Source: Selaginella moellendorffii (lineage: Eukaryota > Plantae > Lycopodiophyta). Taken from it: DNA of 64,000 nucleotides. The stretch lies in NCBI RefSeq assembly GCF_000143415.4, contig NW_003314332.1:806001-870000 (forward strand), in the 5' to 3' direction. Every line of letters begins with the position of its first letter. The stretch's first letter is position 1. The notes under the pieces are model-generated. The model had not been told where the DNA came from and ran no database searches. It worked only from the letters and a program-made list of their open reading frames with translations. Below are positions 2,168 through 60,000 of this stretch, piece after piece. A program made the position numbers and the translations under genes.

Positions 2168-2297
2168 TAAGCTCGAACACTAATACATGCTGTGGGGTGA
2201 AAGCCCAGAGCGTGTGTCTTCCAACGGGGGGGGAGGGGGGGGGGGGGGGCTGTGGGGGGTTCCAAAAGTATAGTAGGGATAGTGTGGGTGTTGGAGG
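2168..2297 (+). promoter_or_regulatory. Putative rDNA RNA polymerase I promoter / initiation site (TATAGTAGGG 2269-2278; +1 probably A2275)
   Basis: Matches the plant Pol I start consensus TATA(G)TAGGG. Preceded by a more AT-rich tract and followed by ETS-type subrepeats that lead, once insertions are removed, to the 18S 5' end roughly 2-2.3 kb downstream. Confidence 0.7.
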
Positions 2298-3330
2298 AGT
2301 TGGGTAGCTGAGGTGGAGTCTGAGTTGAACTCGGACTCCGAGTCCGGGTCCAAATCCGGGCGAGCGAGTGCTCTTCACGTGGTATACTGCGTGCGGGGCA
2401 AGCTCAAAGTGGGCTTTGGCTTCTAGCTTTGGCTCATGGCTCTGCTTTTGCTACCTGCAACATCACACTCCCTGCTCGCCCCCACAATGCGCATTGGGAT
2501 GGGTCCTGGTGAAAGCCGGGAGACTCGGATCTTTGCGTGCGGTGGTGGTGGGCTAGCTAGCAGTTAATCCTCCTGATGTGGGGTGGTGTGTGTCTTTGGT
2601 AGAGGGCTGCACACCTATTGCTGTGGTGCAACACATGTGCTTGTGATGGGTCCTGGCCAATGCTTCGGCAGAACCGGGAGACTCGGACGACCAACATGTG
2701 TGGTGCGCCACAGCTCGGGCTAGCCTCTCGCTTTTGTGTGTGTTTTGGGGCAGTGGGGTGTTCTCACCCCCTCCCAAGCACACACCCCTTGCTGTGCTGT
2801 AACCATTGAGTCCAGATCCGGGCGGGCAAAATTCCCTTGTGTTTGAACGTGGGTGAGCTCAGTCGCATGGGGGCTTAGTTGGTGCTTCACAGCCAGGGAA
2901 GTGACACTCTAGACATCTACCCTTTTGTCAAAAATGCATGTGACGGGGGAGCAAGAAGTCACATGCTCTATGCTATTGAGCGACCTTTTGGAATCTCGGG
3001 CAGGGGATGTATTTCTACCTACTATCGATCGCTCCATAGCACAAGAGCATGTAACTTCTTGCTCCCTCCGTCACATGCATTTTAACAAAGGTTTGCTCCT
3101 CTTGTTGTCCCTGATGGGTGATGGCTCCACTTACTTGTGATGCTGAATGAACTGATGTTCCTGGTGTGACCACCAAGTCCGGATCCGGGCGGGCAATTCC
3201 CTTGTCTTGAACTTGGGTGAGCTCAGTCGCATGGGGGCAGCTGGGTTCTGAGGTTCTGAGCTCAGTTGCATGGGGGCTTGGTGGGGAGCTGGGTTCTGAG
3301 GTGACTAATGCAAAACATGTATGTGCCTGC
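2298..3330 (+). repeat. rDNA 5' ETS part 1 with subrepeats
   Basis: Unit GATCCGGGCGGGCAA(AA)TTCCCTTGT..GGGTGAGCTCAGTCGCATGGGGGC at ~2815, ~3182 and (partial) ~3257; the same units recur at 34293-34880 just upstream of 18S. Confidence 0.7.
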
Positions 3331-6300
3331 TGTGAAACACAAAATCCCTAGGCCCCAAAGTGGAGCCGAAAGGGCACCATGTGGTAGTGGCCGAAGCGAA
3401 AGCCAAACGAGCGTAACATGTTTGGACTAAAAGCTCCGACTTGAAAAGGTCGAGAGTGGGTGTGGAACTCCCAACGAAGTGCTCAAGGAATGAGCACAAA
3501 GCAGGCAATAAGCGAGGCTCCAAAAAGGGACCCAAAAGGACCAACACATGACACATGGAAGTGTCCAAGATGGACCCGAGTTGGGGTCCAAAGTGGAGTC
3601 CAAAGTGGAGTCCGAGATGGATCCGAGTTGGAGTCCGAATTGGAGTCCGAGAAGGACCCCGAGATGGAGTCCGAGATGGAGTCCGAGATGGACTTGAGAT
3701 GGACTCGAGATGGAGTCCGAGGTGGAGTCCAAGATGGAGTCTGAGATGGAGTCCGAGATGGACCCGAGATGGAGTCCGAGATGGACCCGAGATGGAGTCC
3801 AAAGTCGAGACCGAGACCAAGACCAAGACTGGGACCAAGACCGGGGCCGAGACCGGGACCGAGACCGGGGCCGAGACCGAGCCCAAGCCCGAGTCCGAGC
3901 CCGAGTCCGAGTCCGAGTCCGAGTCCGAGTCTGAGTCCGAGTCCGAGTCTGAGTCCGAGTCCAAGTCCGAGTCCGAGTTCGAGTCTGAGAGGGTGAAAGC
4001 CTAAAGCGTTTGTCTCCCAGACCCTGGGGGGTTTGGTGAGCTCCAAAAGTATAGTGAGGGGGAGGACTGCAGTGGAACCAGTTTGGCCAGGAAAGGCCAG
4101 TTTGGCCCAGGAAGGTCGGACCCAATGTTGGGTGATAAGTTGCCCACTGGGAAGTCCAAGACTAAAGTGAACACGGACCAACAAGCGGGGTAGCTTGGTG
4201 AAGTGTTCAAGAGCCGGCTCTAGTTCCCCTGGGAGATCGACTAGCCGATGCTCCCAGTCCAAGTGTGGGTGGCACTACCTACTTGGATACCTGTCGTGGC
4301 TCAACGGAACCTCGCTCTAAGCCCATGGCTAGAGCACATAAAGGCAAAAGGCAGGGAGAGTACCCATGAAGCTTGCGTAAGACCACGGTGTTCCGAAATG
4401 TTGTCCCAAAGTCCCAAACGGTGAAAGGGAAGAGGATTAGGCCTCTAATGCAGTGACCAAGGATACGGTCACATGGTGAGGAAGTCCCAAAGGATAGTGG
4501 GACTTAGCGGTCGGGCCTGCGGGCCTTGATCCAGTGGCAGTCTTGGCAAACACGACCATGGACTAAAAGGGACTTGGTGGGGACTGGAAAAGAGTTGTCG
4601 GGGAAGGCTATTCCCCATGTCTGTGGGCATCCTAAGGATGTTGAGGAGTAGATCTGGGATGATCACTCATGGACGGATGGCCCAGTCTTTGAGAGACGGG
4701 ACTATGATGCAGGTGGCATTAGACCACTGACGTGACCAAGGTGAATGGGCATGGCCTTAGCATAATGGGCCGATATGTCGGGGGTACCTTGGGGTGTCGG
4801 TCATGGGATCGGACACGTGGAGCACTTGGACCAAGTGCAAATGTGGATGCCATTCTCGGGGCTAGCAAGCCCCAAGCCCTAACTGGGACTTATGGAGGTT
4901 GTGAATGAGACTCCTCCAAGTGGTCGGAGGTGTGGTTAAATGACTAGAGTAAAATGGAAAAATTAGTCGCTTACAATTTGGTATTGGAGCTGGTCCTTAG
5001 TCCGACTATTATTGGTGCTCAAGTATATCACCACTTGTATTGAAATTGGAAGGTCCTAGGGATGGACCTATCCTTGAGGAGTAGCATGTCGAGAGGACAT
5101 AGCTCTCCACTCAAGTTAATGTGTGAACTTGTGTGCAATGTGGTGGATAGAAAGGGGCCAATAATGGAACGACTTTGGGATCTTGGGAACAGTATAAGGT
5201 TTTCCTCGGAGAGTTGAGGATGTGATCCAGATGAACATTTGATTTAGCAAACTGGCTAATGTAGTTGTGGTAAACAACTATAGTTGGGATCACGGGGAAG
5301 ATGTAGACTCAAAAACAATAAAGGAGTCACAAGATTAACCTCATATAGTGAGGCTGGTGCTCATGAAATTGAGACAAGAATTAATGACCGTGAAAGGTCA
5401 AATACGGATGAGGACACGAGTCCTTGAAATGGTGGCGGCTATCTTTTATAAATGCGGGAACAAACCCAAGGAGTTGGGGGTGTGCTCAAAGAATGAGTTG
5501 GTATTCTCATCACATGGACAACTGGTCATAAGGGGCAAAAGATTGCCCCCAGAGAACAAAATCAAGTGTTGAAGTAACACTTGCAAAGATGGTCCTTGTG
5601 AGTAGGACATGAATACAAGAGTTGTATTCTAGTGAGCTGGCACCTCAAAAGTAGGACTTCTTGGGTCGTCGGATTAGCAAAGTCCAAAATGTCTGATGAC
5701 TCTAATAGAGTCAAGGAATAATCCTAAGGGATTGATGGAAGCATTTAGACTGAAGTGTGTGGTGCCCTATGAAGGATGGGGAGGATCTTAAGATCCAAGT
5801 ATGAGAACAGTGTAAGCGACTAAATTTTCCATTTTAGTTTAGCCACTTAACGACACTCCTGACCATTTGGAGGAGTCTCATTCACAACCTCCATAAGTCC
5901 CAGTTAGGACTTGGGGCTTGCTAGCTCTGAGAATGGCATCCATGCCACTCAACCTTTGCACTTGGTCCAAGTGCTCCACGTGTCCGATCCCATGACCGAC
6001 ACCCCAAGGTACCACCGACATACTAGCTTGTTATGCTAGGCCATGCCCATTCACCTTGGTCACACCGATGGTTTAATGCGACCTACATCATAGTCCCATC
6101 TCTCAAAGACTGGGCCATCCGTCCATGAGTGATCACTCTAGATCCACTCCTTAGCATCCTTAGGATGCCCGCAGACATGGGGAATAGCCTTCCCCGACAA
6201 CTCTTTTCCAGTCCCCACCAAGTCCCTTTTAGTCCGTGGCTGTGTTCGCCAACACTGCCACTGGATCAAGGCCCGCAGGCCCGACCACTAAGTCCCACTA

Positions 6301-7202
6301 TCCTTTGGGACTTCCTCACCATGTAACCGTATCCTTGGTCACTGCATTAGAGGTCTGCTTCTCTTCCCTTTCACCGTTTGGGACTTTGGGGCAACATTTC
6401 GGAACACCGTGGCCTTACGCAAGCCTTATGGGTCCTCTCCCCGCCTTTCGCCTTTTGGTGCTCTAGCCATGGGCTTAGAGCGAGGTCCCGTTGAGCCACA
6501 CTAGGTATCCAAGTAGGTAGTGCCACCCACACTTGGACTGGGAGCATCGGCCAGTCGATCTCCCAGGGGAACTAGAGCCGGCTCTTGAACGCTTCACCAA
6601 GCTACCCCGTTTGTCGGTCTGTGTTCACTCTAGTCTTGGACTTTCCAGTGGTCAGTTCATCACCCAACACTGGCTATGGCCTTCCTGGACCAAACTGGTC
6701 CTTTCTGAGCCAAACTGGCCCTTCTTGGCCAAACTAGCTCCACTGGGCTCCAACCCCCACAAGCTCTATTTGGTTAAAGTGGGAATTGTCATTATCCCAC
6801 TTGTAAAATAAGGTTTCCAAACCTTTATATAGTATATAAATATAACAAAATTCAACTGCATTGAGGTACATGCCATTTTATTTTAAACAAGGAAATGTCT
6901 ACTCAATCACTTCTCCTCCCCCTGCCACTGCTTCACCTCTCTCTTCTCCTTGTCATCGTCGTCCAATTTCTTTCCATCCTTTTAATATTGGCTCAGTTGC
7001 TCCGAGTCTAGGTGGAGCCCAAGTCCCCATTCAATCTTTACTTTCCCCTTATTAATAAAACAACTTCGTAGACTTCCAATAACATGCTGTAACACTTCTA
7101 GTATAATGCAAATCCTCTCAAAGAATTGTCTTTTAATATTAATACAATGGCATGGAACCCCATGCCATAATAAGTTACATTTTTAAATAAATACATGCCA
7201 TC

Positions 7203-8065
7203 TTAGACTATTATTTTTTGCCTCCAACGCCTATACAATAATCTTGGAATTTCATCACTCTCCACACTATCAGGATTTAAACCCAATAGTAATGCCATCT
7301 CTTCTCTAATACGTCCACGCTCATGTTCAGTGGTCGAAGAACCCATCCGGTTGAGCAGATTATGGAGATGCAGATAGTGCTTGGCTAGACAATATACATG
7401 CCATAAATGATGACTGGTGTCTGTCCGATCAAATGGCTTCTGATATACCGTTCCATTTGCCATTTGGTTGATTTCTGCAGCCACCTCCTGGACTGGCCGG
7501 TTCTCTATCACCATTGCTCCAAGCCGTTTTGCAAGGTCCCCTAGAACATACGGTTTCTTCTCCCTAGTTTCCATACTGCAAGAGATGGGGTGCACTGCAT
7601 ATGTGTGCGTGTTCGCTGCAGTTTTAATCGGCGAGTCATCGATGATGAGGATTTCACTTGACCTAGTAGTCTGGTTCATCACTACAGCCTCTGGCTTGAC
7701 GAAGATGGGCTTGCTACCCCTCACATGGACCATAGTCAAGCAATCCTCCTGCGTTAGGAGAAAGTCAAATGGTAATATTACTCGCGTCTGATCGTGCATC
7801 ATCTGTAGCAACGTTAATGCATTGTGGCGCATCATGGATGTCCAAACTCCCAATTGCAAATTGAACCCAGCCCTCTGTTTTAAGTGTCGCATGGTCATTA
7901 TTAGATCCCGCAGTTTCTCCCGTGTGATTAATGTGAATGTGTCTCTTTTGACCAACTTGCGACCGCAGGCTTTGGAGGGTGCAGTGACATTCGAGGACGA
8001 GCCACACTCATGGGAGAAAAGGACACCGTTCAGATCAAAAACGATACAGTACTTTCGCTGTGACT
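7203..8065 (-). CDS. FCP1/SCP (NIF)-type HAD phosphatase domain, transposon cargo (probably terminal exon of a larger gene)
   Basis: Motifs IVFDLNGVL, GVWTS, LTQEDC, KPIFVK and LIIDDSPIK are typical of plant FCP1-homology proteins. Copy 2 (61698-62560) has premature stops. Confidence 0.8.
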
Positions 8066-8112
8066 CTGAAATGAAATGTGTCAGCATAAAAAATGGTACA
8101 AGTCAATTTTAC

Positions 8113-9910
8113 CATCTACAATATTAGCGAATGGTGCTCCCGATGGTCGTTCAAAGGGTTTTGGTCAAGGAAACGTGAAGGGCGGAAATACTCTCCTCTA
8201 CAATGTGGGGTCAATTGCATCCGATGGCATGTGGGCACATGCCATTTCAGCTGTAGACTCTGGTACAACTGGCTCAATAGTGGCATGGGGTGGTTCCGAT
8301 GGCGTGTGATCACACGCCATTTCAGCTGGTGCCTCCGTTGGTAAAGTGGACATGACCGAACAGGCAGAAGGGGCGGTGTAGGGAGGTTCCAACGGCACGT
8401 AGTCAGATGATTGGGCACACGTTGAGTCCGTTGGAAATGAGGATACGACCGGCTCGGCGGCTGGGGCGGCCTCATGCGGGTCCAATGGCGCCTGGTCACC
8501 GTCAGTTGGATACGTGGACAAGATTGACTCAGTGGTATGGGCAGCATCAAGTGGAGCGTGGTCAGCTTGCTTGGCGTTGATATGGATAGTAGCCTCCACC
8601 AGCTCTGATGACTCTTGCAGGCAAGTAGAGTCCACTGGCGGATCCATATGCATGTCCAAATATCTCCCTTCGATTGAGATGGTATCCTCCCTACTGGCTA
8701 CTAAAAACAAACTCATTAGCACATTGAATCGACTATACTGTATTTACCATCAACTGCTATTGAGGAACTAGGACCGATATCACTTGGGCGCACTGCTGAT
8801 TCTAAAGGATTGGACATACGTTTCGACCCTTGCTTGGCACTATCCTTCCTCGACACTAAAGGCTAGAGTTTGTATCTTAATTCAACTGAATAATCTCTAC
8901 TTACCATTTGCTTTGCAACCTACATGGACAATGTTAGAAATGGTAAAAGGTTAGGAATGGATGTACTATTATTTACCTGATGGTTTGTCTTGTATGACCT
9001 TCCTCCGCTGCTCTTTGGCCACCTCAAGCTGGCCATCGTCGTCATCATCGTCGTCGTCGTTATTGTGATCGTCACCATTGTGAGGACCATCCAAGTCCTC
9101 TTCGTCCTCCTCTTCTTCATCTTCCTCTTCTTTGTCCTCCTCTTCGTCCTTCTGCTCTTCCTGCTCATTATCTTTCTCTGGCTCCTCATCCCCCTCCTGC
9201 ATTTCTTCCATAGGCTGCTCAGGCTGGATGGCTTGTTCTTCCAGGACCATCTTGGGAAAATCATCTGGCCGAGTCTCCATTTCAAAATACAAGACATCCA
9301 TAGCCTGTTTTAGTGCGTGACCTAGGACCGTATCCTCACCCGACTGTCTTAACATGGTTTCTGCACGTTCTTGCACCCTTCGAAAACGACGAGATGAGAA
9401 AAACGTGGCCCTGACTTGAAAAGCATCCCTCATCCATTGTACCTCTCCATTGAGATTGGGGAAGGGGAGTCCGCCATAGGAATCTGAGTCAGGAGGTGGT
9501 GACCGCGAGGCATTACCTATCATCTTTTCGTTGCCCTTCTTCCTTTTCGAATCAAACGCCTCTGATCCCGACGACTGTCCAACGTGCTTTCGCTTTTTAT
9601 GACCACTGTCAGTTTGAGCTTGGCTGGTGCTTGCGTGTTTTGCCTTTGAAGAAGTGTCTCCTGCAAGGAATGGCATGAGACCACATGCCATTGCAAATAT
9701 AATTTGTACCTCCTTTTTTCCTATTGCTTGTCTGTTTGTCCTTCTTCGACGCGCCACCAGTGCGCTTTTCAGTCCTCGTGTCTGAATATTCACAACGATC
9801 TATAATCAAAATGGCGTGAGGCCTCACATGACCTTACCTTGTGCAGGTTGTGAGCTCGGCCCAACAGTAGCTGTTAACGCCATTTCAGCATCTGGGGGTG
9901 GCCACGCTCC
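8113..9910 (-). CDS. Low-complexity exons (Lys-rich/NLS-like, acidic, Pro/Ala-rich linker) of the cargo gene
   Basis: ORFs 8969-9793 (KKRK, long E/D tract) and 8198-8722. Short GT-AG introns at 9800-9837 and 9661-9709. Exon boundaries are partly uncertain. Confidence 0.5.
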
Positions 9911-9959
9911 TGCATACAGAGCTTGTGAGATAACATTTAAATTTAAAGTGCGTACTCAC

Positions 9960-12508
9960 CAGGTTCGCAGAGAAGATACTATTTTTCTTTGGCAACTATA
10001 ATTATATGCTTCATTGAAGTCACCTCTTCAATGGAGTTTGTCACCGCAACACACGGGACACCCTTGAGTAGTGCGGCTCGAAAGAATAGTCTGCCGCAGT
10101 TGTACTCGACAACGCATTTGCCCTTGGAGTCGGAGGCAGGTGCTATTGCGTTGAAGACCCAGCTGAGCATTTCCCATGCTGCACCTGGAGCTTTCTCTGG
10201 ATTCGAAAGCTCCATAGCCGTCTTCAGTTCCTTAGGCACGGGTAAATTGACCTCCCTCAGATCAATTCGATTGGCCTTGTCGAACGAAGCTGGGAAGTCA
10301 CTCCAGTCCCACTCTGCTGCAGGACTAATAACAAGGGCGAGTGTGAAGATGCGGACATTCGTCGGTATCTTCTTCTTAGCCATTATCCCATGGATCTCCC
10401 GCATCTCCTTGCCTTTCAACCGAGCCTTCACCTCGTTCAAGGCCTTCCAGAACTTGTGATAGGATTCGGAGTCATAGATCATATAGTGGACTGAAGATTC
10501 CACCTCCGCAAGTCCCACCATTAAGTCAGTAATGGAGCTGACTTCGTCTGCATGAGTGATCTCCTCGTTTGTGAAGTCCATCACACAAAAGATGTTCTTG
10601 ACCTGCTCATCTCCGCGGGAAACGACGCTCCTCCACCTTTGATCCTCATCCGAATTCACGTATACCCGGTAAGGTTCTCGATAGGCCTTTGCTGTGGGGT
10701 CGAGCTGTTTCTGAAGTCGGCGGTCGACATCCCTTTTAATGAAATTTGGATACTGATCCAACTTCTCAGCTTTACTTTTCGTGGCATCCCGCAGCAGATC
10801 GATGAACTTGGGGGCCCCCTTCACGTACTCGTCGATGTCTTCATTTGACAACTCCAGCTCTTCCATCATCTCTTGCGTGGTGTCGATGCTCACCCTCTCC
10901 ACGGCCACTTGCTCGAAGATCCAATCCTTCAATAGCGCACGAGCTCTCAGAGTCGTGCACAAGTCCTCGTATGTCACAATATGGCCGGGAGTCATTTTGG
11001 TCTTGTTGAAGACTACCTCACCACGTAGAAGAGCATTAGCCACTGTCAGAAGGTCGTCGTCGTCTAGAGACCGCAAGAAACGCAAGGCGTTGAGCTTCAA
11101 ATCATTGGGCTTCCGGCTGTCCTCCACACCCATTGAGTTTAGCAACTCCCCGTCATGGTACCTCCTCAGCACATCTACCCATTTGTCAAAAACAACTTTT
11201 GTCGCGAGTAGAATGTTATGGATGCTGAGTGTGTCATTGACCCCCAGTGTTTTCGAGAGAAGACTCGAGAATTCCTGCAATGGAAATGGCGTGAGGCCAC
11301 ATGCTATGCCACATGCAACGAGGCTTACCTGCCAGGCGCTAGTTGCTAGTGCACGTCCTTGTCCTGGTTTTTTTGGCTTCTTCAGTTGAACCCAGAGCTT
11401 CCGTGTTCGTGCCAATGTCTCGTGCAGACCCGATTTGTAGCACGTTTCTTGCTTGACATTCTGCGCGTGGGAGATGGATATGATAGATCAGAGGGGCGAG
11501 TTGCCTTTTATCAGGCGGACAACTCTTGTCTTGAAGACTTTCTTCACCTCCTCGCCCACCATAATATCCACAACTATCTCTTGCATCGCCAAGCTAGAAT
11601 GCTGCCCGGAGACGGCATAGAACCGGATGTTCTGATCGTCCAACACCTTCCTATTGATCAAGTCTGGAAACCTCGTCTCGCCCTTCATTGTTTGGTAGTA
11701 GGGGATCACGTCTGCGATGTCGGGTGTTACTGGACTTGCCAGCATCTTCTGCTTCAGTTTCTCCACCCACTCATCAGATACTAGCCTGTGGTTGTATTTG
11801 CTTTGGATGTCGATACGACTCACGTCGATTGTATATACTTTGTTGGAATAGTAACAAGTACTATTATCTGCGACGATTTTTGCTGCCTCTTCTTGCTCTT
11901 TCTGCTCTTTGCGGCTCTTCTTTTTGGTGGGTGTAGTGTTCGAACCCGAGGCAATGGCATCACCGAGTAGCTTCTTTTTTGGAGCAAGAGAGTCGGACGT
12001 CGGCTTGAGCTTGACCACCCTTTTCTGCTTCGGGGTAGTTTCCAGATTGACCCCCTTCCCCTTCGCTTCGCGAACTGGAGGCACTCTCAACGGCTCAATG
12101 TTGGAATATAGTTTTTGAACATCGCCGTAGGTGAGGTCCATGGATTCCATGTGATCTTCATAGACCCGCAGTGTCTTTGAAATTGTGGGCCTCCTAGACA
12201 ACCTCTCCCTAGCTCCCTCTAGGAATTCCTCATAGCCGCTGCCCCCCTCCAGGAAGCCGCTAGGATGTGCAAGGTGGATCTTGAAGGCGGACGCTGTCTC
12301 TACCACAAGTGCCAGTCCATATTCTTGCATGGAACTGCATGGAGTGTCTGTCACTTGGATGAGGATCCCCATGCATTCTTTTCTCCCACCATCTGTGTTG
12401 TACAGCCTCAGATCCTCGCCTTCCATCCCGAAAGTCCAACTGGTGAGCTCCTCCCCCTTCTCTGCATCCACATTGACAGTGGCTGGAAGAAGAACACAAT
12501 TCCTCACC
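9960..12508 (-). CDS. Cargo protein: ParB/Srx-like domain plus degenerate N6A/N4C-methyltransferase-like C-terminal domain (one in-frame TGA in this copy)
   Basis: ORFs 11488-12528 and 9979-11415 are in the same frame, split by a TGA that is CGA in copy 2. NHRLVSDEWVEKLKQKM..FYAVSGQHS resembles the ParB/DGQHR fold. EKAPGAAWEMLSWVFNA..GKCVVEYNCG..FFRAALLKGVPCVAV resembles the beta-class MTase EKP..GDxVLDxFxG..AAxxxGRxxIG segment. In-frame 54-nt intron at 11275-11328. Confidence 0.6.
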
Positions 12509-14322
12509 TGTTCAGAAATGCACAACAATTAGATCTGACAGATGAAAAGTTAGCAGCTGGAAATAACGTGAGGCCACACGCCATTCACCACTGCATCAGA
12601 TGTCTTGAGGCTGCATCCTAAGATGGCGTGAGGCTACACGCCATCTATAACCGGACTGCACTCGAGAGCCCAATCAGTGCATGCCAATGTTGCTACTGAA
12701 TGGCATGTGGCCTCATGCCATTTTCTACTTGGCCTAAAAGACTTACCATTTGAAGCCGAATGGAGGCGTGACAATCGAGGCCGAACTTGCTGGCGAATGT
12801 GCACTGTGTGTGCAGCGGATCGTAGTAGCAAGGCTACTCTGCCACTTAACAGTTGGAGAGTGGCACTGAAATCTCCCGGGACGCCAAGTGGGCTGCGTGT
12901 GGGTGGCGGAGTGGGCGGCGGAGTTGGCGGCGAAGTTACAAACTGGGTGTGTCTTGAAGTGGACGCTGATACACACGAGCGCGATGCGAGCGCGAGTGTG
13001 ATGCAAGCGCGAGTGGACGCCGATGCACACGAGAAACCTGTAGAAAAGGTAGATGAGCGCGAATGTGAGCGTGATCGCGAGTGGGAGCGCGATGCGAGCG
13101 CGAGTACGAAGCAAAATGCAAAACCTAACCTCACACGCGCGAAATGTCACAACGGTTGGTAATCCCGCCACGTCATCATTCCTCGGATTTGGGTGCCACC
13201 ATTAATTTCTGGATTGCCGCGCGCAGGCAAGCACGCAAAATCCAAAAGAAATCCGCAACGTGATCATTCCTCGGACTGCATGCACGCGAAATCCAAAAGA
13301 AAGATCATGATTGGGATATCATTTAATACCCTCGCTATATTTATACCATGCATGATTGGATATTCCAAAGCATCTTGTATTTCCAAAAATGGCAGATGTT
13401 CAACTAAATAAAGAAATTCTATCTGTTTCTATTTTTCTCTCAAATCAATATTATAGCGTGTGGGCTCATGCAATTTTGAACCAAAGAAACCCAAAAAACG
13501 TTGGACCCAAAATATTTTGAAAAAACCCAAAAAACCCTAAACATTTTAAACCCAAAAATCCAGGCGTCCTGTGGCGTTATTCCTTGAATGGCGTGTGGGC
13601 ACATGCCATTTTCAGGGCCAAATGCTGAATGGAGAAAAATTCCCTTTCAGTGCAAATGCTGCAAGAGGCAGATGCCGAGCACAAAGGACTGTAACTACCT
13701 CACATGACACAGATAAAATTTTCTCCATTTGGCAAAGATAAACTTTATAGCGTGTGGGCTCATGCAATTTTGAACCCAAAAAATGCACCAAAAAAATTCT
13801 CGGCGTCATCTGGCGTTATCTTTTGAATGGCGTGGGGCCGCATGCCATTTTCAGGGGCACATAGGAGTATATTCCTAGGATATTCTAACACGCGCGAGAA
13901 ATTTTTGAGTTTTCTGGAGATCCAACTGTTAGATCGCAACTAGATTTTACAGAATGGTATACAATGTCTTTCTTGATGACTCTGCAAAGAAGCATCTCGA
14001 TCGGACACCACATGAGACCACACGAGCTTTACAATGTTTCAGAGGCATTTGCCATAGATCCGACCGTTATTTTGTTCCAAGATTTTACAGTTTGGTGTGC
14101 ATTGACCTTTCCATCGACACTGCAAAGGGACATCACAATCAGATGCGGGATCACAAGAAACTAACTTCACTAACTCTGGTTTCACCAAGATCTACGTAAG
14201 GAGTTATGAAATGAAAGGACCCTCTCTATTGAAATGTGTTTATGGTCCTAGGGGCATTGTGACATATCAAAGGATTTTGCATCAAGTTCTGTATTTGCAT
14301 GTTTATCAAGCTACTAAATTGC

Positions 14323-14347
14323 TAAACCCTAAACCCTAAACCCTAAA
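14323..14347 (+). repeat. Three telomeric (telo-box) AAACCCT units
   Basis: TAAACCCTAAACCCTAAACCCTAAA in the region between the divergent transposase and cargo genes; two units in copy 2 (~55581-55598). Confidence 0.8.
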
Positions 14348-36529: not shown

Positions 36530-36530
36530 A

Positions 36531-36567
<37 letters not shown>

Positions 36568-36650
36568 ATCTCAACCATAAATGATGCCGACTAGGGATTG
36601 GCGGATGTTATTTGGATGACACTGCCAGCACCTCATGAGAAATCAAAGTC

Positions 36651-36709
<59 letters not shown>

Positions 36710-37116: not shown

Positions 37117-37160
<44 letters not shown>

Positions 37161-45103: not shown

Positions 45104-45175
45104 TGTAAGCGACCTTGGGCTTGAGTAGTACTGGGCTGGGAGACCACCTAGGAAGTCCAAACCAAGGGGTTTACA
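45104..45175 (+). mobile_element. 72-bp Cassandra-like mini solo LTR in ITS1
   Basis: TGTAAGC..TTTACA, perfect TSD ACTTG (45099-45103 / 45176-45180); the body is the 5S internal-promoter segment. Confidence 0.85.
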
Positions 45176-45296: not shown

Positions 45297-45452
45297 TTAC
45301 TCTCAGCAACGGATATCTAGGCTCTCACAACGATGAAGAACGCAGCGAAATGCGATACGTGATGTGAATTGCAGAATTCCGTGAATCATCGAAGTTTTGA
45401 ACGCAACTTGTGCCCGAGGTTCATCCCAAGGGCATGCCTGCCTGAGTGTCCA
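45297..45452 (+). rRNA. 5.8S rRNA (probable pseudogene)
   Basis: ACTCTCAGCAACGGATATCT..CGATGAAGAACGCAGCGAAATGCGATAC..GAATTGCAGAATTCCGTGAATCATCGA..GGGCATGCCTGCCTGAGTGTC. Confidence 0.95.
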
Positions 45453-48784: not shown

Positions 48785-48947
48785 CCAGAACTAGCGATGC
48801 GGGATGAAACGAAAGCAGGGCTACGGTGCCAAAGTGCGCGCTAACCCAGATCCCACAAAGGGTGTTGATTGATTAAGACAGCAGGACGGTGGTCATGGAA
48901 GTTGAAATCCGCTAAGGAGTGTGTAAGAACTCACCTGCCGAATCAAC
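48785..48947 (+). rRNA. 26S rRNA pseudogene, continuation (then deleted)
   Basis: CAGAACTAGCGATGCGGGATGAA..AAGACAGCAGGACGGTGGTCATGGAAG..AACTCACCTGCCGAATCAAC. Confidence 0.93.
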
Positions 48948-51142
48948 ACGCTCACATGTCCACTCCACTCTCTCCCAGCGGCCACTCTTCTCTCCTCTTG
49001 CCTTGGCACCTTCCCTCTCCTCTCCGCCCTCCCTCACCATTCTTCTAGTCCGACTTTGTCCTCTCTCGCTAGTCCGACTTTGCCAATGGGGTTTTAATTA
49101 GTTTAGCCTCTATAAACCATAGAGTCTGATTTCAACATGCTCGAAACCGGGAAAGAGCTCTTCAAGATTTTTAGGGGGGGGTGGGACGAGGGGGACAAAG
49201 TAGAACTGGTACTCAAGCCCATGATGTCCGATGTCCAAGCTTCCGAAGTTCCTGGTGTGGAACTCTGTCGACTCGGGGAGGTACACGTGCCTTCATTCCT
49301 GAACATGTGCTGCCAAATCCATATTGGTGGCTTCCACGTCCATTCTTCTTCTCCAGCCTCACTTCTTCCTCTAAAAAACGGCCACAGCTCCTTCTCCTTT
49401 GCTATCTTCCCTTCCTCGCCTCGTTTTATCAGCGTGTCCAGGCGGGCCGCGAGTGAGACAATCAGTCTGGACCAAACCTTTGAGATAGTTGCTCGAGCCG
49501 AGGGGTCTGTGTCCTCGAACAGCCTGGTGCAGCGAGCCTTCCATATCTCTGCTAGTGTGCATCCCCGAAGTGCATCGAAGAGCTCCTGGTGGAGATGCGT
49601 AATGTGTGTCCGAGTTTGGTTGAGTTGATCAAAGTGTGAGGCCTTGTTGTGTCTCCACTTCCATGCATCAGGATTCTTTGTTTTCCCTGGATGAAGCTAC
49701 CCCAGAGCGCTGATTCGTATGTGATTGCAGCTCCTCCGGTTGACGTTCGTTTGAGTACCGCTGCTGCACCTTCCCATACTTCCTGTGCAGCCGGACATTC
49801 CCATAAGATGTGTCGCTGAGTTTCTGTGGCGCCACAGGTCTTGCAGGCTGTGTTCGGAAGATGTATGGCGACCAGAGAGGGAAGACGTTCTTGTTGGGCT
49901 AGCCACATGAAGTAGCAGTTCTTAGCTGACCAGCGCCCCTTCCAGATCTTGTTGATGTAGTGTGAGTGGTTCCTGGAACGGATCTGTTGGGCCTTTGCTT
50001 TCCGGATGAGGGAGGATCGAGTCGGCACCCTGATCAGTTTGCGGCCTAGCTTGGTCTCGTACTGGAAGAAGTCCTTGCACATGGTTCCCCTCCAATGCCA
50101 CTCTGCGGGATCCCACTTGAGTTCGTCCAAGGTTTGTTGGCGGAACCAGTAGAGGCAAGCATACTAGTTTTCTGGGATCAAAGGATCAACGTTGGCAGTT
50201 TTTTTCTCCATTTGAATCACTCTAATCGGTTTAGCTCTGCTCATGTCGGGGAGGTCCTCGTACTCGGGGGTAACGATGGGGTACAAACGTCCGGCCTGTC
50301 CTGCCTCGAAGACTAGTCCCGATGCCATGTTGGGGAGGGTGCATACGATCGATTCATCCACCTTCCACCAACGATGGTGCTGATCTTCTTGCAGGTTTAG
50401 TCATTCAAGGCATGCGTGTTTGGCTGCTAAAAAGGCTGTCTGGAATTTACACATAAGCTCTATTTCGTTAAAGTGGGATTTATTCAGTAAAATGGGACTA
50501 GGTACAAATTTTCAAGTATTTGAAAATGACGTGAAATTATATGTTTTTGGTCCAGGGGCTAGACATATCTGGGGCATGGTGACTAGCGCGGTGACTTTGT
50601 GTCCAGACTGAGTCCATCTGGTTGTATAATAAATCTCATTGTCAAGGTGAACAAGCCGAATCTGAAACTAAAGAAGAGCGATGGCATGCGCGCACACACT
50701 ATTTGTTTGTTCATTGAGCGTGTGGTGAGCTTTCCAAGATGAACGTCATTCCTATTAGCCAGACATATAACTTAATGGTGAGAACATTTAGATATTATTC
50801 AATGTTATCTTTTTCTAACGAATCTAATTGTGAAGGTGTAGCAAGAGGCATTGCTAGTCTGGAGAAGTCATTTAACTCATTTGACCCTTAGTGTATTTTC
50901 ATGAAACTAAATAACATTCATATTATTAGGAATTTCTCTAGTACCTTTTTTTTACGACATAGAGTCTTGCATTTCTTTCAAAGGTGATTTAGTAAAAGGC
51001 CTGAGGGCACATGCCATTCTATTTCTCAGACTGGTATTAAGATATACTAGTGCAAAGGGCCACATGCCATCACGCCTCCTCTGATTCAGATTCGGATTGT
51101 TCACCTTGAAATAAAATACATTAGAAACTTAGTAAAGGAATA

Positions 51143-54100
51143 TTAATGAATCTCACCTTGAACCCGGGTTATGAATGCTCTTGCTGCATCTCTTGCATGG
51201 TCTGGCAAGGTGATGGTGGCACTCTGCTTCCGCATCCAACCATGCACAACATTATCCACTGATATGCTCATGCTGGGATCCCTTGGATTCAGCACCCATC
51301 TCTTTTCTAGGCAATCCTTCGTATATCCGGAACTTGGCTTGAACCACTCCACAGTTACATTGAAGGAGTTAGTTTCCGCATCCTCCTCTGCATCAGTGAT
51401 GCAGCGCCCCACCCATATCATTTGTTTTTTATTACTGGGTCTGACAAGCACGACCATTCCTTTGCAGACCTGTACTGGATTGAATGCTGAATCCGGCTTC
51501 TTGTTCCTCGGCCCACAATAGTGATCCTCAACATCGTTATCTGTCACTGCATTTCCAGAGGACATTGTTCCGCTACTATCTAGTGCTCTGGGTTCTGGCC
51601 AAAAGGACTCTTCCAATTCTTCATATACAACCGGCCCATTTTGGATAGCAGATATAATCTTCTCCCAGTATTTGAGCAAAGGCTTGCACCTCTGAAAATA
51701 GGATTCTCCACCAAACACCAACCCCCTCTTCCAGAAGGCAATATGCTGTCTAATCCCGGCCACTATACTTTCCTGGTCTTTGAGTCCATCCGGGTGCATC
51801 GGCCGTGGGGAACCCTGAGGAATCATAGGTTCCCCAGTTATGGGATCTCTCTTGAAGAGTTCAATGCCATCCACTGGCAGCCACACTGTGTCCCATTCTC
51901 TCATCTTGTACCTCATCACTGGAGCACCGTCACACATGCTGAAATGAAACTGAAGAGGCTTGGAGTGGCCAATCAGCGTTTCGGATCCGTCCCTGATGTA
52001 GCCTCTTACAAACCCCTTAAAGTCTGGAACCTCTGTCACAAGTGCAGCTTCAACAGTGCCTTTGATGCAATTTTGGAATTCATCGTAGAGTTGTGGGAGG
52101 GTGAGGACATTGGATCGCCAGAGGGACTCTGCCAGGTGACTGAACATGGCATCAACGTCTTCATGAGTGTGCCCAACCATGACAAAGCCAAGTGTAACCG
52201 TTTCAAATATGCCTTTGGCAACAAGCATCGCCAAGTACGCGAAGACGTACATGTTTTTGTTCTCACTGCTAGCATTGTCTGTTTGGAGCAGAAGATGGGG
52301 TGGAAGGCCACATCAGCCGCAAGAACTTCCTTGAGATTCTGCTTCGTTTGGATGAGGCTGTGCATTCACCGGGCGACCAGCCTCGTCGGAATGGCATGAG
52401 GCCTCACGTGATAACCCTACAATCTGACGGCCAACATATTCACTGGGATGGCATGGGGCCCCACGCGATACTGCAAGCCTTTGCTCCTCCTCCAGCTGAA
52501 CCCTGTATGGGGTTCGATCGACAAGGGCCTTATGCAAGGGTTGGCCGTTCAGCTCAGTCTGCGCACTTTGCAGAGACCTTAAGTATTTTGCTAGGGACGC
52601 AATCATCATGTTTGCACCCCCGCCACCCCATAGAGGTACAAAGAAGTTCCCATAGTTCTGGGCACCATGCCCATGAGCGATTATGCCAAACAGAGACATA
52701 GGCAGCTGCATGGATGAAGAGATTGCCTTGGGAGCAGGATTGAGTCGAGGTAAGCACGTCTTTTTCTGGTCCATTTTGTCGTGGATGATGCAGAGGTTAG
52801 AGTCAGGTCTCTCCATGGAGAGAATCCTGTTATGATAATATGCAGTCCTGCAGCTTCTCTGCTCGATGTTGTGGTCGAGCCGCCTTCTAACCAACGTCTC
52901 TCGCTCTTGAGCGCTGCAAGAATTCTTTGACAAAGCCATTTTGATAGCAGTGCACTCGTCACACTTTGAAAAGCTGGAGTACTTTCCTATACTCACATCC
53001 CTGAACCTGTTGCTCCACAATCTACTAAATCTAGATTGGCTCAGCTTCCTGTAGCCATTACTCTGGAGTTCCCGATTCACATCTTCCAATATGGCCCCCT
53101 TGGTATACATGGAAGGGAGAACTCGTTGGGTGTCTCGTGTTCCATCTTCCAAGAGGCGGGTTTTATGTGGTTGCTGCTCGCTACATATCTCGACAAACCT
53201 CTTGAAGATTGCCTCTCCATATACAACATGACCCCTGGTTTTGTGCGTACTGTTGTTCCCATGGACTGCCTGTTGAACCCTTTGTTCCTCGAACTCAGTT
53301 TTGATTCTGTAGAATGTGGTTCGAGGGACTCCATAAATGATTCTCCATGCCTTCATGCAGACCAAACCCCTCTGGAAGACCATGCCCCCCACCTGATGTT
53401 CTGAAGCATCAACAGATGACCGTAATGCCTCATACACAAAATTGCGAGCTGCCTTCCAGGACAATGTCTTGTATCTTGCTCTCTCCTCTTCAATAGCATC
53501 CCAATCAACATGTTGACAGCACCTCCTCTTGCAACAAGCAACTGTCGAGACCATTTGAACCTCCATCGCCATTTTCTGCCTTTTCGGTTCGTTGCTCAGA
53601 TCCCTTTGGCTGCGCTGTAGGAAGGTGTACTTTCTTTTCCCATGAAGAGATGTTCTGTCATCAGTTGTAGTGGTGTTTGATTGTGAATCCTTCACATTCT
53701 CAAACACTAAATGCCTCAATTTCCACCACACAATGCTTCCAATAGTCAGACTGTTTTCTTCTGTGTCAACAACCTCTAAAATCGCAACTCCAATATCATC
53801 CCAGCCCAATTCTTGATTAGCAACTGCATCTCTTGGATCGACAACTGTGGCTAAGCCCTCAGCTACCACCTCCCCTTCGGGGTTGTTTAGAAACACCGTT
53901 GCCTGAATCCATGTAGCACGGTTCTTAAGATCCACGGAGGGAACATGCGTCGCACTTGCGCTGTCCCCAACATCTGCTTTCTTCTGCAGATTTTTCAAGG
54001 CAACAACAACATTTACCCCGACGACCATCTCTCCTCGTTCAATAGCGACCACATTCCCATCGAAGACAGTCTCTACTGATACAGCAGCATTGCCTTCCCC

Positions 54101-54211
54101 AAGCCTTTGACAGTGTATAACAAAGTTCCGATCCATAGACACAAGGGTCCCTTTTGCAACTCTCTTCCCACCATTCAAAATGTAAACCTTTTCCCCAACC
54201 CTGAAGGCCAT
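51143..54211 (-). CDS. DDE/DDD transposase, Sola-like, ~1020 codons with one in-frame TGA at 52313-52315
   Basis: ORFs 52313-54211 and 51143-52252 share a frame (GSSCG*CGLPPHLLLQTDNASSENKN). Motifs: KCDEC..H, IIHDKMDQ, DNASSENKN, VGHTHEDVDAMFS. Two N-terminal VAxG repeats resemble Tnp1/En-Spm-associated domains. Confidence 0.8.
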
Positions 54212-57069
54212 TCTGAAAGTGCAGAAAAGAAGTTAAGACCATACAAAAAATGATTGGAGAATGGCCTAAATCATAACATACCAAATAGCATGAGGCCACA
54301 TGCCATTATTCAAACATGCTATTGACACCCACGTGAAATTTCGCATTCACAAAATTGGCATGAGCCCTCCCATACGTAAATATATATAGTTGCAGCAAGG
54401 CAAAAGGAATATGGCAATAGGCTAGGAGGGCCCAAAGATGGCATGAGGCCTCATGCCATCTTGATATACACACAGCTGCAGGCAAGTAAAAACATACAGG
54501 ACAATACGCTAGCCATGAAATTGCAAGGGCCCAAGATGGCATGTGGCCTCATGCCATTTCTAAATGTGGTCCTAAGCCATTCCATGGTGAACATACCAGG
54601 AAGCACAAGTGCCGAATATCAAGAGGAAGCAGTAGCCACACCAAAGACAGTGCCGCTCGCAACACCGCAACTACTCGTAGCGCCGCTCGCAACACCGCAA
54701 CTGCTCGTAGCGCCGCTCGCACAAACTACCACTCGCATAAACTGCTGCTCGCAATGGCGCTCGCAATGCCGCAACCGCTCTTAGACGCATAAACCACAGC
54801 TCACAACGCCGCTTACACAAGCAGCGCTCACTGCGCTTAGTGGAACCAAGAACACGGCGCACAAAAATGATAGACCTAGGAATGAGTTCGAGAATTCAAA
54901 AATAACACACGCTTGAACGTCACATCAAATCCTCTGACAAACAAGATCTTATGACTCCTCTGACAAATTTCAAACTGAGTAGCTTCTAGACTTTGCTATC
55001 GGAGGTTGAACTTTGTCACATCATGTCCTTGCCTCGATCCAACTGTGCCATGTCAGTGATTCGAACTTTGCCATGCCATGTTAACGATCCGCGCCAAGAT
55101 TATTCGCCGTGTAAAGGAATAATTATGCTGTGTGTGTATGTCCATTTATGGCAATATAAGGCCACACACCATTCAAAGAATAATGCTAGTCGAGCATTTT
55201 TTGGTGCATTTTTGGGTTCAAAATTGCATGAGCCCACACGCTATAAAGTTTACCTGTACCAAAAATAGAAACAGCTTTATTTACTTGGGAATTCAAGTGG
55301 TTGAGGCATTTTTAAACTTACAAACACATGCCCTACTTACATTCATTTGGTTGCTTAAAATTCAAAAATATTATAAACCTTTCTTTTTGCATTTTCAATG
55401 TTTTCAATTATGGTTTTTGATTTTCGCAGAACCAGCCTAGTAATCTATTTGCATCCCGTCATGTTTATAGCTAGCTTTCGTTTGTCCCCTTCGCTAGCCT
55501 GAGATACATCTGCTCGGCATCTGCCTCTTATAGCATTTGCCCAGAAAGGGCATCTTTCTTCACGCAGCATTTGCCACATGTTTAGGGTTTAGGGTTTAGC
55601 AATTCAGTAGCTTGATAAACATGCAAATACAGAACTTGATGCAAAATCCTTTGATATGTCACAATGCCCCTAGGACCATAAACACATTTCAATAGAGAGG
55701 GTCCTTTCATTTTATAACTCCTTACGTAGATCTTGGTGAAACTAGAGTTAGTGAAGTTAGTTTCTTGTGATCCCGCATCTGATTGTGATGTCCCTTTGCA
55801 GTGTCGATGGAAAGGTCAATGCACACCAAACTGTAGAATCTTGGAGCAAAATAACGGTCAAATCTATGGCAAATGCCCCTGAAACATTGTAAGGCTCGTG
55901 TGGTCTCATGTGGTGTCCGATCGAGATGCTTCTTTGCAGGGTCATCAAGAAGGACATTGTATACCATTCTGTAAAATCTAGTTGCGATCTAACGGTTGGA
56001 TCTCCAGGAAACTCAAAACAATCTCGCGCGTGTCAGAATATTCTAGGAATATACTCCTATGTGCTCCTGAAAATGGCATGCGGCCCCACGCCATTCAAGA
56101 GATAACGCCAGATGACGCCGAGCATTTTTTGGTGCATTTTTTGGGATCAAAATTGCATGAGCCCACATGCTTGAACGTCACATCAAATCCTCTGACAATT
56201 TATTTAGCTGAACATCTGGCATTTTTGGAAATACAAGATGCTTTGGAATATCCAATCATGCATGGTATAAATATAGCGAGGGTATTAAATGATATCCCAA
56301 TCATGATCTTTCTTTTGGATTTCGCGTGCATGCAGTCCGAGGAATGATGACGTTGCGGATTTCTTTTGGATTTCACGCATGCGCGCGTCGATCCAGAAAT
56401 TAATGGTGGCGCCCAAGTCCGAGAAATGATGACGTGGCGGGATTACCAACCGTCGTGACATTTCGCGCGTGTGAGGTTAGGTTTTGCATTTTGCTTCGTA
56501 CTCGCGCTCGCATCGCGCTCCCACTCGCGCTCCCACTTCTCTACAGGTTTCTCGTGTGCATCGGCGTCCACTCGCGCTTGCATCACACTCGCGCTCGCAT
56601 CGCGCTCGTGTGCATCGGCGTCCACTTCAAGACACACCCAGTTTGTAACTTCGCCGCCAACTCCGCCGCCCACTCCGCCACCCACACGCAGCCCACTTGG
56701 CGTCCCGGGAGATTTCAGCGCCACTCTCCAACTGTAAGTGGCAGAGTAGCCTTGCTGCTATGATCCGCTGCACACACAGTGCACATTCGCCAGCGAGTCC
56801 GGTTGTCACGCCTCCATTCGGCTTCAAATGGTAAGTCTTTTAGGCCAAGTAGAAAATGGCATGAGGCCACATGCCATTCAGTAGCAACATTAGCATGCAC
56901 CGATTGGGCTCTCGAGTGCAGTCCGGTTACAGATGGCGTGTAGCCTCACGCCATCTTAGGATGCAGCCTCAAGACATCTGATGCAGTGGTGAATGGCGTG
57001 TGGCCTCACGTTATTTCCAGCTACTAGCTTTTCATCTGTCAGCTCTAATTGTTGTGCATTTCTGAACAG

Positions 57070-60000
57070 GCGAGGAATTGCGTTCTTCTTCCAGCCACTG
57101 TCAATGTGGATGCAGAGAAGGGGGAGGAGCTCACCAGTTGGACTTTCGGGATGGAAGGCGAGGATCTAAGGCTGTACAACACAGATGGTGGGAGAAAAGA
57201 ATGCATGGGGATCCTCATCCAAGTGACAGACACTCCATGCAGTTCCATGCAAGAATATGGACTGGCACTTGTGGTAGAGACAGCGTCTGCCTTCAAGATC
57301 CACCTTGCACATCCTAGCGGCTTTCCGGAGGGGGGCAGCGGCTATGAGGAATTCCTAGAGGGAGCTAGGGAGAGGTTGTCCAGGAGGCCCACAATTTCAA
57401 AGACGCTGCGGGTCTATGAAGATCACATGGAATCCACGGACCTCACCTACGGCGATGTTCAAAAACTATATTCCAGAGGCAGCAAAAATCGTCGCAGATA
57501 ATAGTACTTGTTACTATTCCAACAAAGTATATACAATCGACGTGAGCCGTATCGACATCCAAAGCAAATACAACCACAGGCTAGTATCTGATGAGTGGGT
57601 GGAGAAACTGAAGCAGAAGATGCTGGCAAGTCCAGTAACACCCGACATCGCAGACGTGATCCCCTACTACCGAACAATGAAGGGCGAGACGAGGTTTCCA
57701 GACTTGATCAATAGGAAGGTGTTGGACGATCAGAACATCCGGTTCTATGCCGTCTCCGGGCAGCATTCTGTGAGACACAAAATCCCTAGGCCCCAAAGTG
57801 GAGCCGGAAGGGAGCCACATGGTAGTAAAACGTTTGGACCGTAAGCTCCGACTTGAAAAGTCAAGAGCAGGAGTGGAACTCCCAACGAAGTGCTCGAGGA
57901 ACGAGCACGAAGCGAGCAAAAGGCGAGGCTCCAAAAAGGGACCCAAAAGGACCAACACATGACACGTGGGAGTGTCCGAGATGGACCCGAGTTGGAGTCC
58001 GAAGTGGAGTCCGAGATGGACCCAAGTTGGAGTCCGAAGTGGAGTCCGAGATGGACCTGAGATGGAGTCCGAGATGGAGTCCGAAGTGGAGTCCGAGGTG
58101 GACCCGAGATGGACCTGAGTTGGAGTCCAAAGTGGAGTCCGAGATGGACCCGAGATGGAGTCCGAGATGGAGTCCGAGATGGAGTCCGAGGTGGACCCGA
58201 GAGGGACCCGAAATGGAGTCCGAGATGGAGTCCGAGATGGAGTCCGAGATGGAGTCCGAAGTCGAGACCGAGACCGGGACCGAGACCGGGACCGAGACCG
58301 AGACCGAGACTGAGATCGGGACCGAGACCGAGACCAAGGCCGAGGCCGAGACCGAGCCCGAGCCCGAGTCCGAGTCCGAATCCGAGTCCGAGTCCGAGTC
58401 CGAGTCCGAGTCCGGAGCCTGAGAGGGTGAAAGCCCAAAGCGTTCGTCTCCCAGACCCTGGGGGGTTTGGTGAGCTCCAAAAGTATAGTAGGGGGGAGGA
58501 CTGCAGTGGAGCCAGTTTGGCCAGGAAAGGCCAGTTTGGCCCAGGAAGGCCAAACCCAGTGTTGGGTGATGAACTGACCACTGGGAAGTCCAAGACTAGA
58601 GTGAATACGGACCGACAAGCGGGGTAGCTTGGTGAAGTGTTCAAGAGCCGGCTCTGGTTCCCCCGGGAGATCGACTGGCCGATGCTCCCAGTCCAAGTGT
58701 GGGTGGCACTACCTACTTGGATACCTGGTGTGGCTCAACGGAACCCGCTCTAAGCCCATGGCTAGAGCACCCAAAGGCAGAAGGCGAGGAGAGTACCCAG
58801 GTGGCTCGCGTAAGGCCACGGTGTTCCGAAATGTTGTCCCAAAGGCCCAGACTGTGGAAAGGAAGAGGAGAAGTCCTCTGGGGTAGTGACCAAGGACACA
58901 GTCACACAGTGAGGAAGTCCTAGAGGATAGTGGGACTTAGTGGTCGGGCCGGTGGGCCTCGATCCAGTGGCAGTGTTGGCGAATACAGCCAAGGACAGAA
59001 AGGGACTTGGTGGGGACCGGAATAGAGATATTGGGGAAGGCTATTCCCCATGTCTGTAGGCATCCTAAGGATGTTAAGGAGTGGATCTGGGATGATCACT
59101 CATGGATGGATGACCCAGTCTTTGAGAGACGGGATTGGAATGTAGGTGGTGTTGGACCACCAGTGTGACCGAGGTAAATGGGCATGGCCTTAGCGTAACG
59201 GGCCGATATGTCGGTGATACCTTGGGGTGTCGATCATGGGATCAGACACGTGGAGCACTTGGACCAAGTGCTAAGGTTGAGTGGCATGGATGCCATTCTC
59301 GGGGCTAGCAAGCCCCAAGTCCTGAGTTGGGCTTATGGAGGTTGTGAATGAGACTCCTCCAAGTGGTCGGAGGTGTGGTTAAGTGACTAAAGTAGAATGG
59401 AAAAATTAGTCGCTTACACATTCTAGCTTGGCGATGCAAGAGATAGTTGTGGATATTATGGTGGGCGAGGAGGTGAAGAAAGTCTTCAAGACAAGAGTTG
59501 TCCACCTGATAAAAGGCAACTTGCCCCTCCGATCTATCATATCCATCTCCCACACGCAGAATGTCAAGCAAGAAATGTGCTACAAATCGGGTCTGCACAA
59601 GATATTGGCACGAACACGGAAGCTCTGGGTTCAACTGAAGAAGCCACAAAAACCAGGACAAGGACGTGCACTAGCAACTAGCGCCTGGCAGGTAAGCCTC
59701 GTTGCATGTGGCATAGCATGTGTCCTCACGCCATTTCCATTGCAGGAATTCTCGAGTCTTCTCTCGAAAACACTGGGGGTCAATGACACACTCAGCATCC
59801 ATAACATTCTACTCATGACAAAAGTTATTTTTGACAAATGGGTAGATGTGCTGAGGAGGTACCATGACGGGGAGTTGCCAAACTCAATGGGTGTGGAGGA
59901 CGGCCGGAAGCCCAATGATTTGAAGCTCAACGCCTTGCGTTTCTCGCGGTCTCTAGACGACGACGACCTTCTGACAGTGGCTAATGCTCTTCTACGTGGT

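Follow-up and report, generated by a model that had tools for sequence, protein, structure and literature searches.

The 5S and tRNA genes have supplied mobile elements with RNA polymerase III (Pol III) promoters (Cassandra, short interspersed nuclear elements (SINEs), Helenus and Ajax). Cassandra is a plant terminal-repeat retrotransposon in miniature (TRIM) with 5S rRNA gene sequence in its long terminal repeats (LTRs); it stands with Helenus and Ajax ('TRIMp3') as a non-autonomous LTR element with a host RNA gene promoter in both LTRs, and this promoter is thought to make the template RNA, with proteins acting in trans (PMC10886601, PMC10946416). Kojima (2024) split TRIMs into Pol III and RNA polymerase II (Pol II) types only (PMC10886601), and the sequences derived from ribosomal DNA (rDNA) that a 2024 review lists in transposable elements (TEs) are only 5S/Pol III cases, a 28S-derived SINE and the intergenic spacer (IGS) repeats of Pokey (PMC10946416). 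Here we describe a 64,000-nt stretch of the Selaginella moellendorffii genome (GCF_000143415.4, NW_003314332.1, positions 806,001–870,000, forward strand), hereafter the window, in which the LTRs of two retrotransposon families, A and B, carry a copy of a predicted RNA polymerase I (Pol I) promoter block that also lies in the rDNA spacer. Positions throughout are those in the window, with 1 as its first letter. The best overall explanation, to which we assign a probability of about 0.5, is that the 45S promoter was captured by one Ty3/gypsy-derived lineage and now serves as its LTR promoter.

Family A resembles the TRIMp3 elements in lacking coding capacity and in having host RNA gene promoter sequence in both LTRs. 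By contrast, TRIMp3 promoters are internal Pol III promoters (5S/tRNA) in elements of less than ~1.3 kb, whereas A and B carry an upstream, external 45S promoter block and are larger, with LTRs of 1.1–2.0 kb and elements of 5.7–7.6 kb (A3 7.6 kb, B 5.7 kb). Family B also encodes gag-pol, unlike the TRIMp3 elements, so that only the coding lack of family A fits the comparison. Rfam found no 5S gene in the window, only 18S, 5.8S and 25S, all outside the LTRs, and ARAGORN found no tRNA-like sequence there. Pokey, a piggyBac element of Daphnia, is mobile, lives in and around rDNA and holds IGS-derived repeats for which a transcription role has been suggested (PMC3849761), but it is a DNA transposon whose sequence consists of spacer subrepeats, not of a gene promoter with an initiator, and does not lie in a transcript-defining terminal repeat. 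The Galadriel-type chromoviruses (Beon, TRRT and Monkey) are Ty3/gypsy LTR elements in 18S genes and rDNA arrays (PMC10946416, PMC2679016). The positions of A3 in the 3' end of 18S, of A1 in the external transcribed spacer (ETS) and of an A fragment in the spacer recall their rDNA insertions (beet and tomato 18S); Galadriel-type elements are described as rDNA insertions and not as promoter carriers, whereas A and B carry the promoter block. The R1 and R2 elements of animal rDNA are retroelements transcribed by Pol I; unlike these non-LTR elements, A and B have LTRs, 5-bp target-site duplications (TSDs) at varied sites and a promoter copy of their own. A full-text literature search, with most subscription journals outside its coverage, returned no publication on an LTR with a Pol I promoter, and an LTR element with a copy of the 45S promoter looks undescribed.

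Results

The spacer block lies directly 5' of the ETS, and further upstream of the 18S gene, in the same sense as the rRNA (Table 1), as an earlier, sequence-only reading of this DNA had placed it. It contains an upstream box, GGGTGAAAGCCCA, a G tract and an initiator, TATAGTAGGG, with the signature TATA(G)TA..GGG that is typical of plant start sites (PMC8928438, PMC6589552). The initiator is identical to the rDNA transcription initiation site quoted for oat (Avena) (PMC5407837) and close to the Cucurbita and Pistia initiators TATATAGGGG and TATAGGGGG (PMC6589552, PMC8928438). Allowing up to three mismatches, the 18-mer core TCCAAAAGTATAGTAGGG occurs nine times in the window against 0.04 expected, and none of 100 shuffles reached nine copies. 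The core copies are located at 2261, 4042 (two mismatches), 26300, 30939 and 58476 on the plus strand, and at 18027, 24218, 38234 and 44062 on the minus strand. All eight copies besides the spacer copy are in element sense and in mid-LTR, and the box GGGTGAAAGCCCA accompanies every one of the nine, 55–74 nt 5' of the core. The sequence-only reading, which had reported a block of ~110–130 bp in the spacer and, in element sense, in the LTRs, was correct on this point and on the coordinates of the block. Exact-pattern scans of metagenome contigs gave no match for the two-box pattern and none for the 19-mer core.

Alignment of all nine copies, together with pairwise local alignments, placed the limits of homology in the spacer at 2160–2296. 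Relative to the predicted start, the span shared with the spacer block is −115 to +12 for the B LTR, −101 to +21 for the LTR of subfamily A2, and only −80 to +3 for the LTRs of A1, A3 and the solo LTR. Counting ungapped columns only, the spacer copy shares 83% identity with A2 and likewise 83% with B, and A2 and B share 87.5% with one another; the A1/A3/solo block is 64% identical to the spacer copy and retains both boxes. The two boxes are invariant in 9/9 copies despite divergence of the sequence between and around them. Six of the nine copies have an identical 18-mer core and the others one or two changes in it, and the rest of the block differs by 13–36%. All LTR copies share three states that differ from the spacer copy.

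We compared public sequencing runs over positions 1–6000 of the window as assembled contigs, using two RNA runs from different studies (X18 and X20) and two DNA runs (X1 and X4). Spliced contigs over 1074–1658, with GT..AG gaps within 1391–1658, confirmed X18 and X20 as RNA. In the low-coverage DNA run X4, a contig over 2040–2297 had a depth of 6.5, compared with 5.5–6.8 for the ETS contigs, and the single-copy flank 1–1600 had no coverage. In X1, the summed depth rose from 20–330 over 1–1600 to ~64,000 over 2001–2200 and ~64,000–127,000 over 2001–3400. The ETS contigs of X18 and X20 start at 2302, plus 8–9 further letters matching 2291–2297, which puts their start ~16 nt past the predicted +1, although contigs cannot fix an RNA end; contig depth in both runs is zero over 1801–2200. 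The RNA contigs continue past 3330 into 34879-like sequence and are therefore derived from units without the A1 insertion. These data indicate that ordinary rDNA units carry 1958–2296 joined to the ETS, with contig depths that leave equal copy number unproven, and that pre-rRNA coverage starts within ~16 nt of the predicted start. The match in depth of block and ETS in X4, together with the starts of the RNA contigs, indicates that the block is no local LTR remnant but the promoter region of ordinary rDNA units and a predicted Pol I promoter. The proposal that the spacer block marks the rDNA core promoter is supported, and the refuting case foreseen for it, intact rDNA units that lack the block, does not hold.

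An LTR fragment does lie nearby, and an assignment of the spacer block to the same LTR remnant was considered and rejected. The fragment at 1748–1957 is the last 210 nt of LTR A and is not colinear with the block: within LTRs these 210 nt lie ~700 nt 3' of the block, and in the spacer they lie 210 bp 5' of it. In addition, a DNA contig that aligns from 1958 onward has a different sequence before 1958, with other spacer sequence in place of the LTR fragment. The earlier description of the spacer copy as flanked by non-LTR DNA therefore needs amending for the LTR A end on its 5' side, though that fragment is not colinear with the block.

The carriers show the hallmarks of LTR retrotransposons, namely TG..CA ends, 5-bp TSDs (A2, A3, solo A and B), a primer-binding site (PBS) and a polypurine tract (PPT). 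LTR A measures 1.65–1.98 kb, begins with TGTGAGACAC, ends with GTCGCTTACA and precedes a tRNA-iMet-type PBS. An assembly artefact is ruled out by the matched LTRs and TSDs of each carrier. Families A and B have in common a TGGTATCGGAGC-like PBS and the PPT ATGGGTGGTGGAGT, with 41 nt shared at the PPT and the final 30 nt of the LTR shared as well, and both have 6- and 12-nt repeat arrays in U3 beside the block; no alignment is obtained between their R/U5 or internal parts. The shared LTR ends, PBS, PPT and hexamer arrays argue that A and B are related or recombinant families using the same replication signals, and correct the earlier view of them as otherwise dissimilar. With these cis signals in common, one capture plus descent or exchange would suffice, and independent capture is unneeded.

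The label of gypsy elements, given earlier to both families, fits B, which encodes gag, a zinc knuckle, protease, reverse transcriptase (RVT_1) and RNase H in gypsy order; no integrase was found in B, and neither an integrase nor a chromodomain elsewhere in the window. It does not fit A, whose internal region has no open reading frame (ORF) above 107 aa, so that A is a non-autonomous relative and no coding gypsy element. A protein search with the reverse transcriptase–RNase H region of B returned 7844 matches, all at 66% identity or less and with no close relative among their sources; the matches gave no clade names. A further difference from the earlier description is that B is nested inside T, a separate TRIM-like element with 196-bp LTRs.

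Within the LTRs, the distance from the initiator to the LTR end is 705 nt in B and 916–955 nt in A, a position compatible with the U3/R boundary. The proposed U3/R location of the block agrees with the sequence to this extent: the block lies in mid-LTR, where U3/R can lie, 705–955 nt before the PBS. No TATAAA, TATATA, AATAAA or ATTAAA hexamer occurs anywhere in the A and B LTRs, in which the block is the sole visible promoter-like element. Directly 5' of the block, every A and B LTR has long arrays of 12-nt (GTCCGAGATGGA) and 6-nt (CCGAGT) repeats (for example at 3563–3989 and 25994–26220, and in the other U3 regions), a placement that recalls the spacer subrepeats 5' of plant Pol I promoters.

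The LTR of T (core ~25604–25626) contains GGGGTTCAAATATAGAGGGAAAG, which matches the Pol I block at its initiator core with an alignment score of 27, compared with 16.2 ± 2.4 in shuffles (0–3 of 1000 shuffles reach 27). T may thus be a third carrier, of the core only. A further 70 nt in the first internal transcribed spacer (ITS1), at 45106–45175, match the final 70 nt of the T LTR at 83% identity, end at its terminus (TTACA) and are followed by a weak PBS-like TGGGCAT; this stretch is probably an old LTR remnant.

Rfam detected a single 45S unit in the window, on the plus strand, and self-comparison and junction sequences showed that it is broken up by nested transposons (Table 1). Positions 1–1700 are low-copy DNA carrying spliced RNA contigs, and the 45S unit therefore lies at an array edge or stands alone. 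The unit is dead, and the fraction of its 31-mers found in any one DNA run examined does not exceed 0.29; no listed run contained half of the 31-mers of 1962–3329. Low-copy DNA lies to the left of the LTR A fragment (1748–1961), and a deletion that took out the greater part of a spacer-inserted A element seems to have created the array edge or orphan unit. The RNA-run contigs at ~676–1686 (plus strand) have 85–95% identity and GT..AG gaps at 1391–1453 and 1599–1658, and an expressed spliced gene, or a paralogue, therefore adjoins the rDNA unit. A 203-aa ORF at 743–1354 had no Pfam match.

ETS subrepeats are present at 2795–3330 and 34290–34878. The number of subrepeats differs between units, because RNA contigs link 3330 to 34879-like sequence and a form that goes back 220 was seen too. 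A3 is inserted ~40 nt before the 3' end of 18S, with TSD copies at 37301–37305 and 44954–44958. An 11–12 kb element is present in two copies in opposite orientation, at 6762–18017 and 50457–63002, which are 97–99% identical and have ORFs matching DUF7869 and a NIF-like phosphatase; the copy at 50457–63002 received the solo LTR A.

Table 1. Features of the 45S unit, the promoter block and the carrier elements in the window
Feature	Position	Strand	Remarks
LTR A 3' end (U5) fragment	1748–1957	+	92–94% identity to other copies; left edge of rDNA homology
Spacer DNA 5' of block	1958–2159	+	part of ordinary rDNA units; DNA contig covers 2040–2297
45S gene-promoter block in spacer	2160–2296	+	−115 to +21, directly 5' of 5' ETS; ~135 bp; predicted
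Upstream box GGGTGAAAGCCCA in spacer block	2195–2207	+	
G tract in spacer block	2226–2259	+	
Initiator TATAGTAGGG in spacer block	2269–2278	+	
Predicted +1	A2275	+	A of TAGGG, by analogy with other plants
5' ETS, first part	2297–3330	+	covered by RNA-run contigs, which run past 3330 into 34879-like sequence
5' ETS, second part	34290–35565	+	subrepeats related to 2795–3330
18S rRNA gene	35566–37320	+	Rfam
18S part 5' of A3	35566–37305	+	~40 nt of 3' end severed by A3; remainder resumes at 44954
5.8S	45298–45451	+	Rfam
25S pieces	45647–46761, 48861–48953	+	Rfam
A1, whole	3331 to 34289	+	interrupted by A2 and T/B; without 3' LTR
A1 5' LTR	3331–4975	+	inserted in ETS; variant block 3991–4060; PBS at 4980
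A2	5811–25237	−	non-coding; nested in A1; TSD AACAG
A2 5' LTR	23263–25237	−	block 24200–24303
A2 3' LTR, split	18018–19212, 5811–6761	−	block 18018–18125
Unrelated 11.2-kb transposon	6762–18017	−	inserted 10 nt past initiator of A2 3' LTR
T, TRIM-like	25564–31914	+	nested in A1; 196-bp LTRs 25564–25759 and 31719–31914; PBS, PPT; host of B
B, Ty3/gypsy	25912–31661	+	TSD CTGCG
B 5' LTR	25912–27022	+	1111 bp; block 26213–26326
B 3' LTR	30504–31661	+	1158 bp; block 30853–30965
A3	37306–44953	−	non-coding; TSD AAGTT; LTR pair 96% identical
A3 LTRs	37306–39069, 43134–44953	−	blocks 38234–38302 and 44062–44130
Solo LTR A	57769–59418	+	TSD CATTC; block 58425–58493

Discussion

The proposed course of events begins with the spacer block as the putative 45S gene promoter, comprising upstream box, G tract and initiator, with a start at about A2275. 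Its module from −115 to +21 alone would have been copied out of rDNA to become part of the LTR in a single Ty3/gypsy-derived lineage, and this one capture, followed by descent or recombination, would have given the carriers of today, the non-coding family A with its two subfamilies and the gag-pol family B. Placed behind the 6- and 12-nt repeat arrays, where U3 would meet R, the module would start the genomic RNA of the element. The non-coding family A would need no translation, and the proteins of its relatives may act in trans. A promoter role is favoured by retention of the module in every LTR that spans the region, and by the fact that its main carrier, A, is non-coding like the Cassandra-type elements.

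Several observations weigh against this proposal or against its Pol I form. RNA of LTR A is scarce, with a contig depth of 0–5 over 4001–5000 compared with 49–2135 for the ETS in X18 and X20, yet LTR DNA is at least as abundant as ETS DNA in X1. The ends of the ETS contigs in X18 and X20 may in part reflect a graph branch at 2296, where LTR homology stops. The block is a conservation island only among A2, B and rDNA; inside family A it is none, with 62% identity between subfamilies compared with 85–95% for R/U5. The proteins of B require a capped, translatable mRNA, and a Pol I transcript would depend on a terminator within the LTR and would have to leave the nucleolus.

As to which polymerase would read the LTR promoter, we give Pol I and Pol II about equal odds, each well short of even. 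For the non-coding family A, Pol I is the leading candidate, also at odds well below even. In its fullest form, which we consider doubtful, the proposal is that the lineage, for which we suggest the name 'p1' elements beside the TRIMp2 and TRIMp3 of Kojima, would replicate from Pol I RNA. Such RNA would be uncapped and nucleolar, started by the 45S promoter of the 5' LTR and reverse-transcribed by the proteins of relatives, and the elements might in this way evade Pol II-directed silencing and do well within and near rDNA.

The strongest competing explanation accepts the rDNA origin of the module and has it work as an ordinary Pol II promoter, in which the TATA-like GTATAGTA would bind the TATA-binding protein (TBP) and direct a start 25–30 nt downstream, giving capped, polyadenylated RNA. 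LTR retrotransposons normally use Pol II, the gag and pol ORFs of B need translation, and the low level of LTR RNA in the RNA runs resembles that of a silenced Pol II element. The homology of A2 to rDNA, which reaches +21, also leaves room for a downstream start. A role as a TATA box alone, however, leaves unexplained why the Pol I-type upstream box, ~60–75 nt before the initiator, is invariant in the LTRs; no LTR has a canonical TATA or poly(A) hexamer, and family A is non-coding. On balance, we regard a purely Pol II role as less likely than not.

Alternatively, the block could be a passive passenger that an LTR acquired by recombination inside rDNA and kept by descent, with no role. The lower conservation of the block relative to R/U5 within family A would fit such a history, as would the view of the 2024 review that rDNA-derived modules for the most part confer no advantage in TEs (PMC10946416). 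This history does not readily account for a block kept in every LTR covering the region, across families whose LTR sequence otherwise does not align, or for a core that is identical in most copies while the remaining block varies; nor do the LTRs show any alternative promoter element. We therefore consider the passenger history unlikely.

Both of these alternatives share with the promoter-capture proposal a transfer from rDNA into the LTR, a direction that is well supported by sequence comparison, because the block holds what appears to be the plant-wide Pol I initiator, because homology ends deep inside the LTR on both sides, because the LTR-specific flanks are missing from the spacer and because the elements contain no other rDNA segment, a search of the LTRs and internal regions of A and B for other rDNA pieces having found none. 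A 43-nt match of the LTR hexamer repeats to ETS 2316–2358 was discounted as weak and too simple a repeat to count. The three states shared by the LTR copies fit a single capture; they could equally be C-to-T/G-to-A decay of the dead unit. The reverse course, in which the present rDNA promoter region would descend from an LTR fragment fixed array-wide by concerted evolution, is very unlikely: LTR pieces do sit in the spacers of the unit (the LTR A end at 1748–1957 and the T LTR match in ITS1) and the three states do set all LTR copies against the spacer copy, but an LTR would first have had to take from rDNA an initiator that is plant-wide and identical to that of oat (PMC5407837), homology stops far from the LTR termini, the LTR flanks (12-nt arrays, R/U5) are not found in the spacer in matching order, and decay of the dead unit can explain the three states.

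The present analysis adds contig support for the spacer block as promoter in ordinary units, and it defines the limits of the module, the nesting of the elements at the locus and the kinship of the carriers. The block points to sequence transfer from rDNA to LTR, and the possible LTR remnant in ITS1 hints at movement in the opposite direction. Even if Pol II uses the block in the LTRs, it would mark a lycophyte Pol I promoter, previously unmapped. If Pol I reads the elements, retroelements would have recruited every one of the three nuclear polymerases, and the p1 lineage would make it possible to ask, in a natural setting, if Pol I promoters are active away from the nucleolar organiser and by what means an uncapped RNA of the nucleolus could be packaged.

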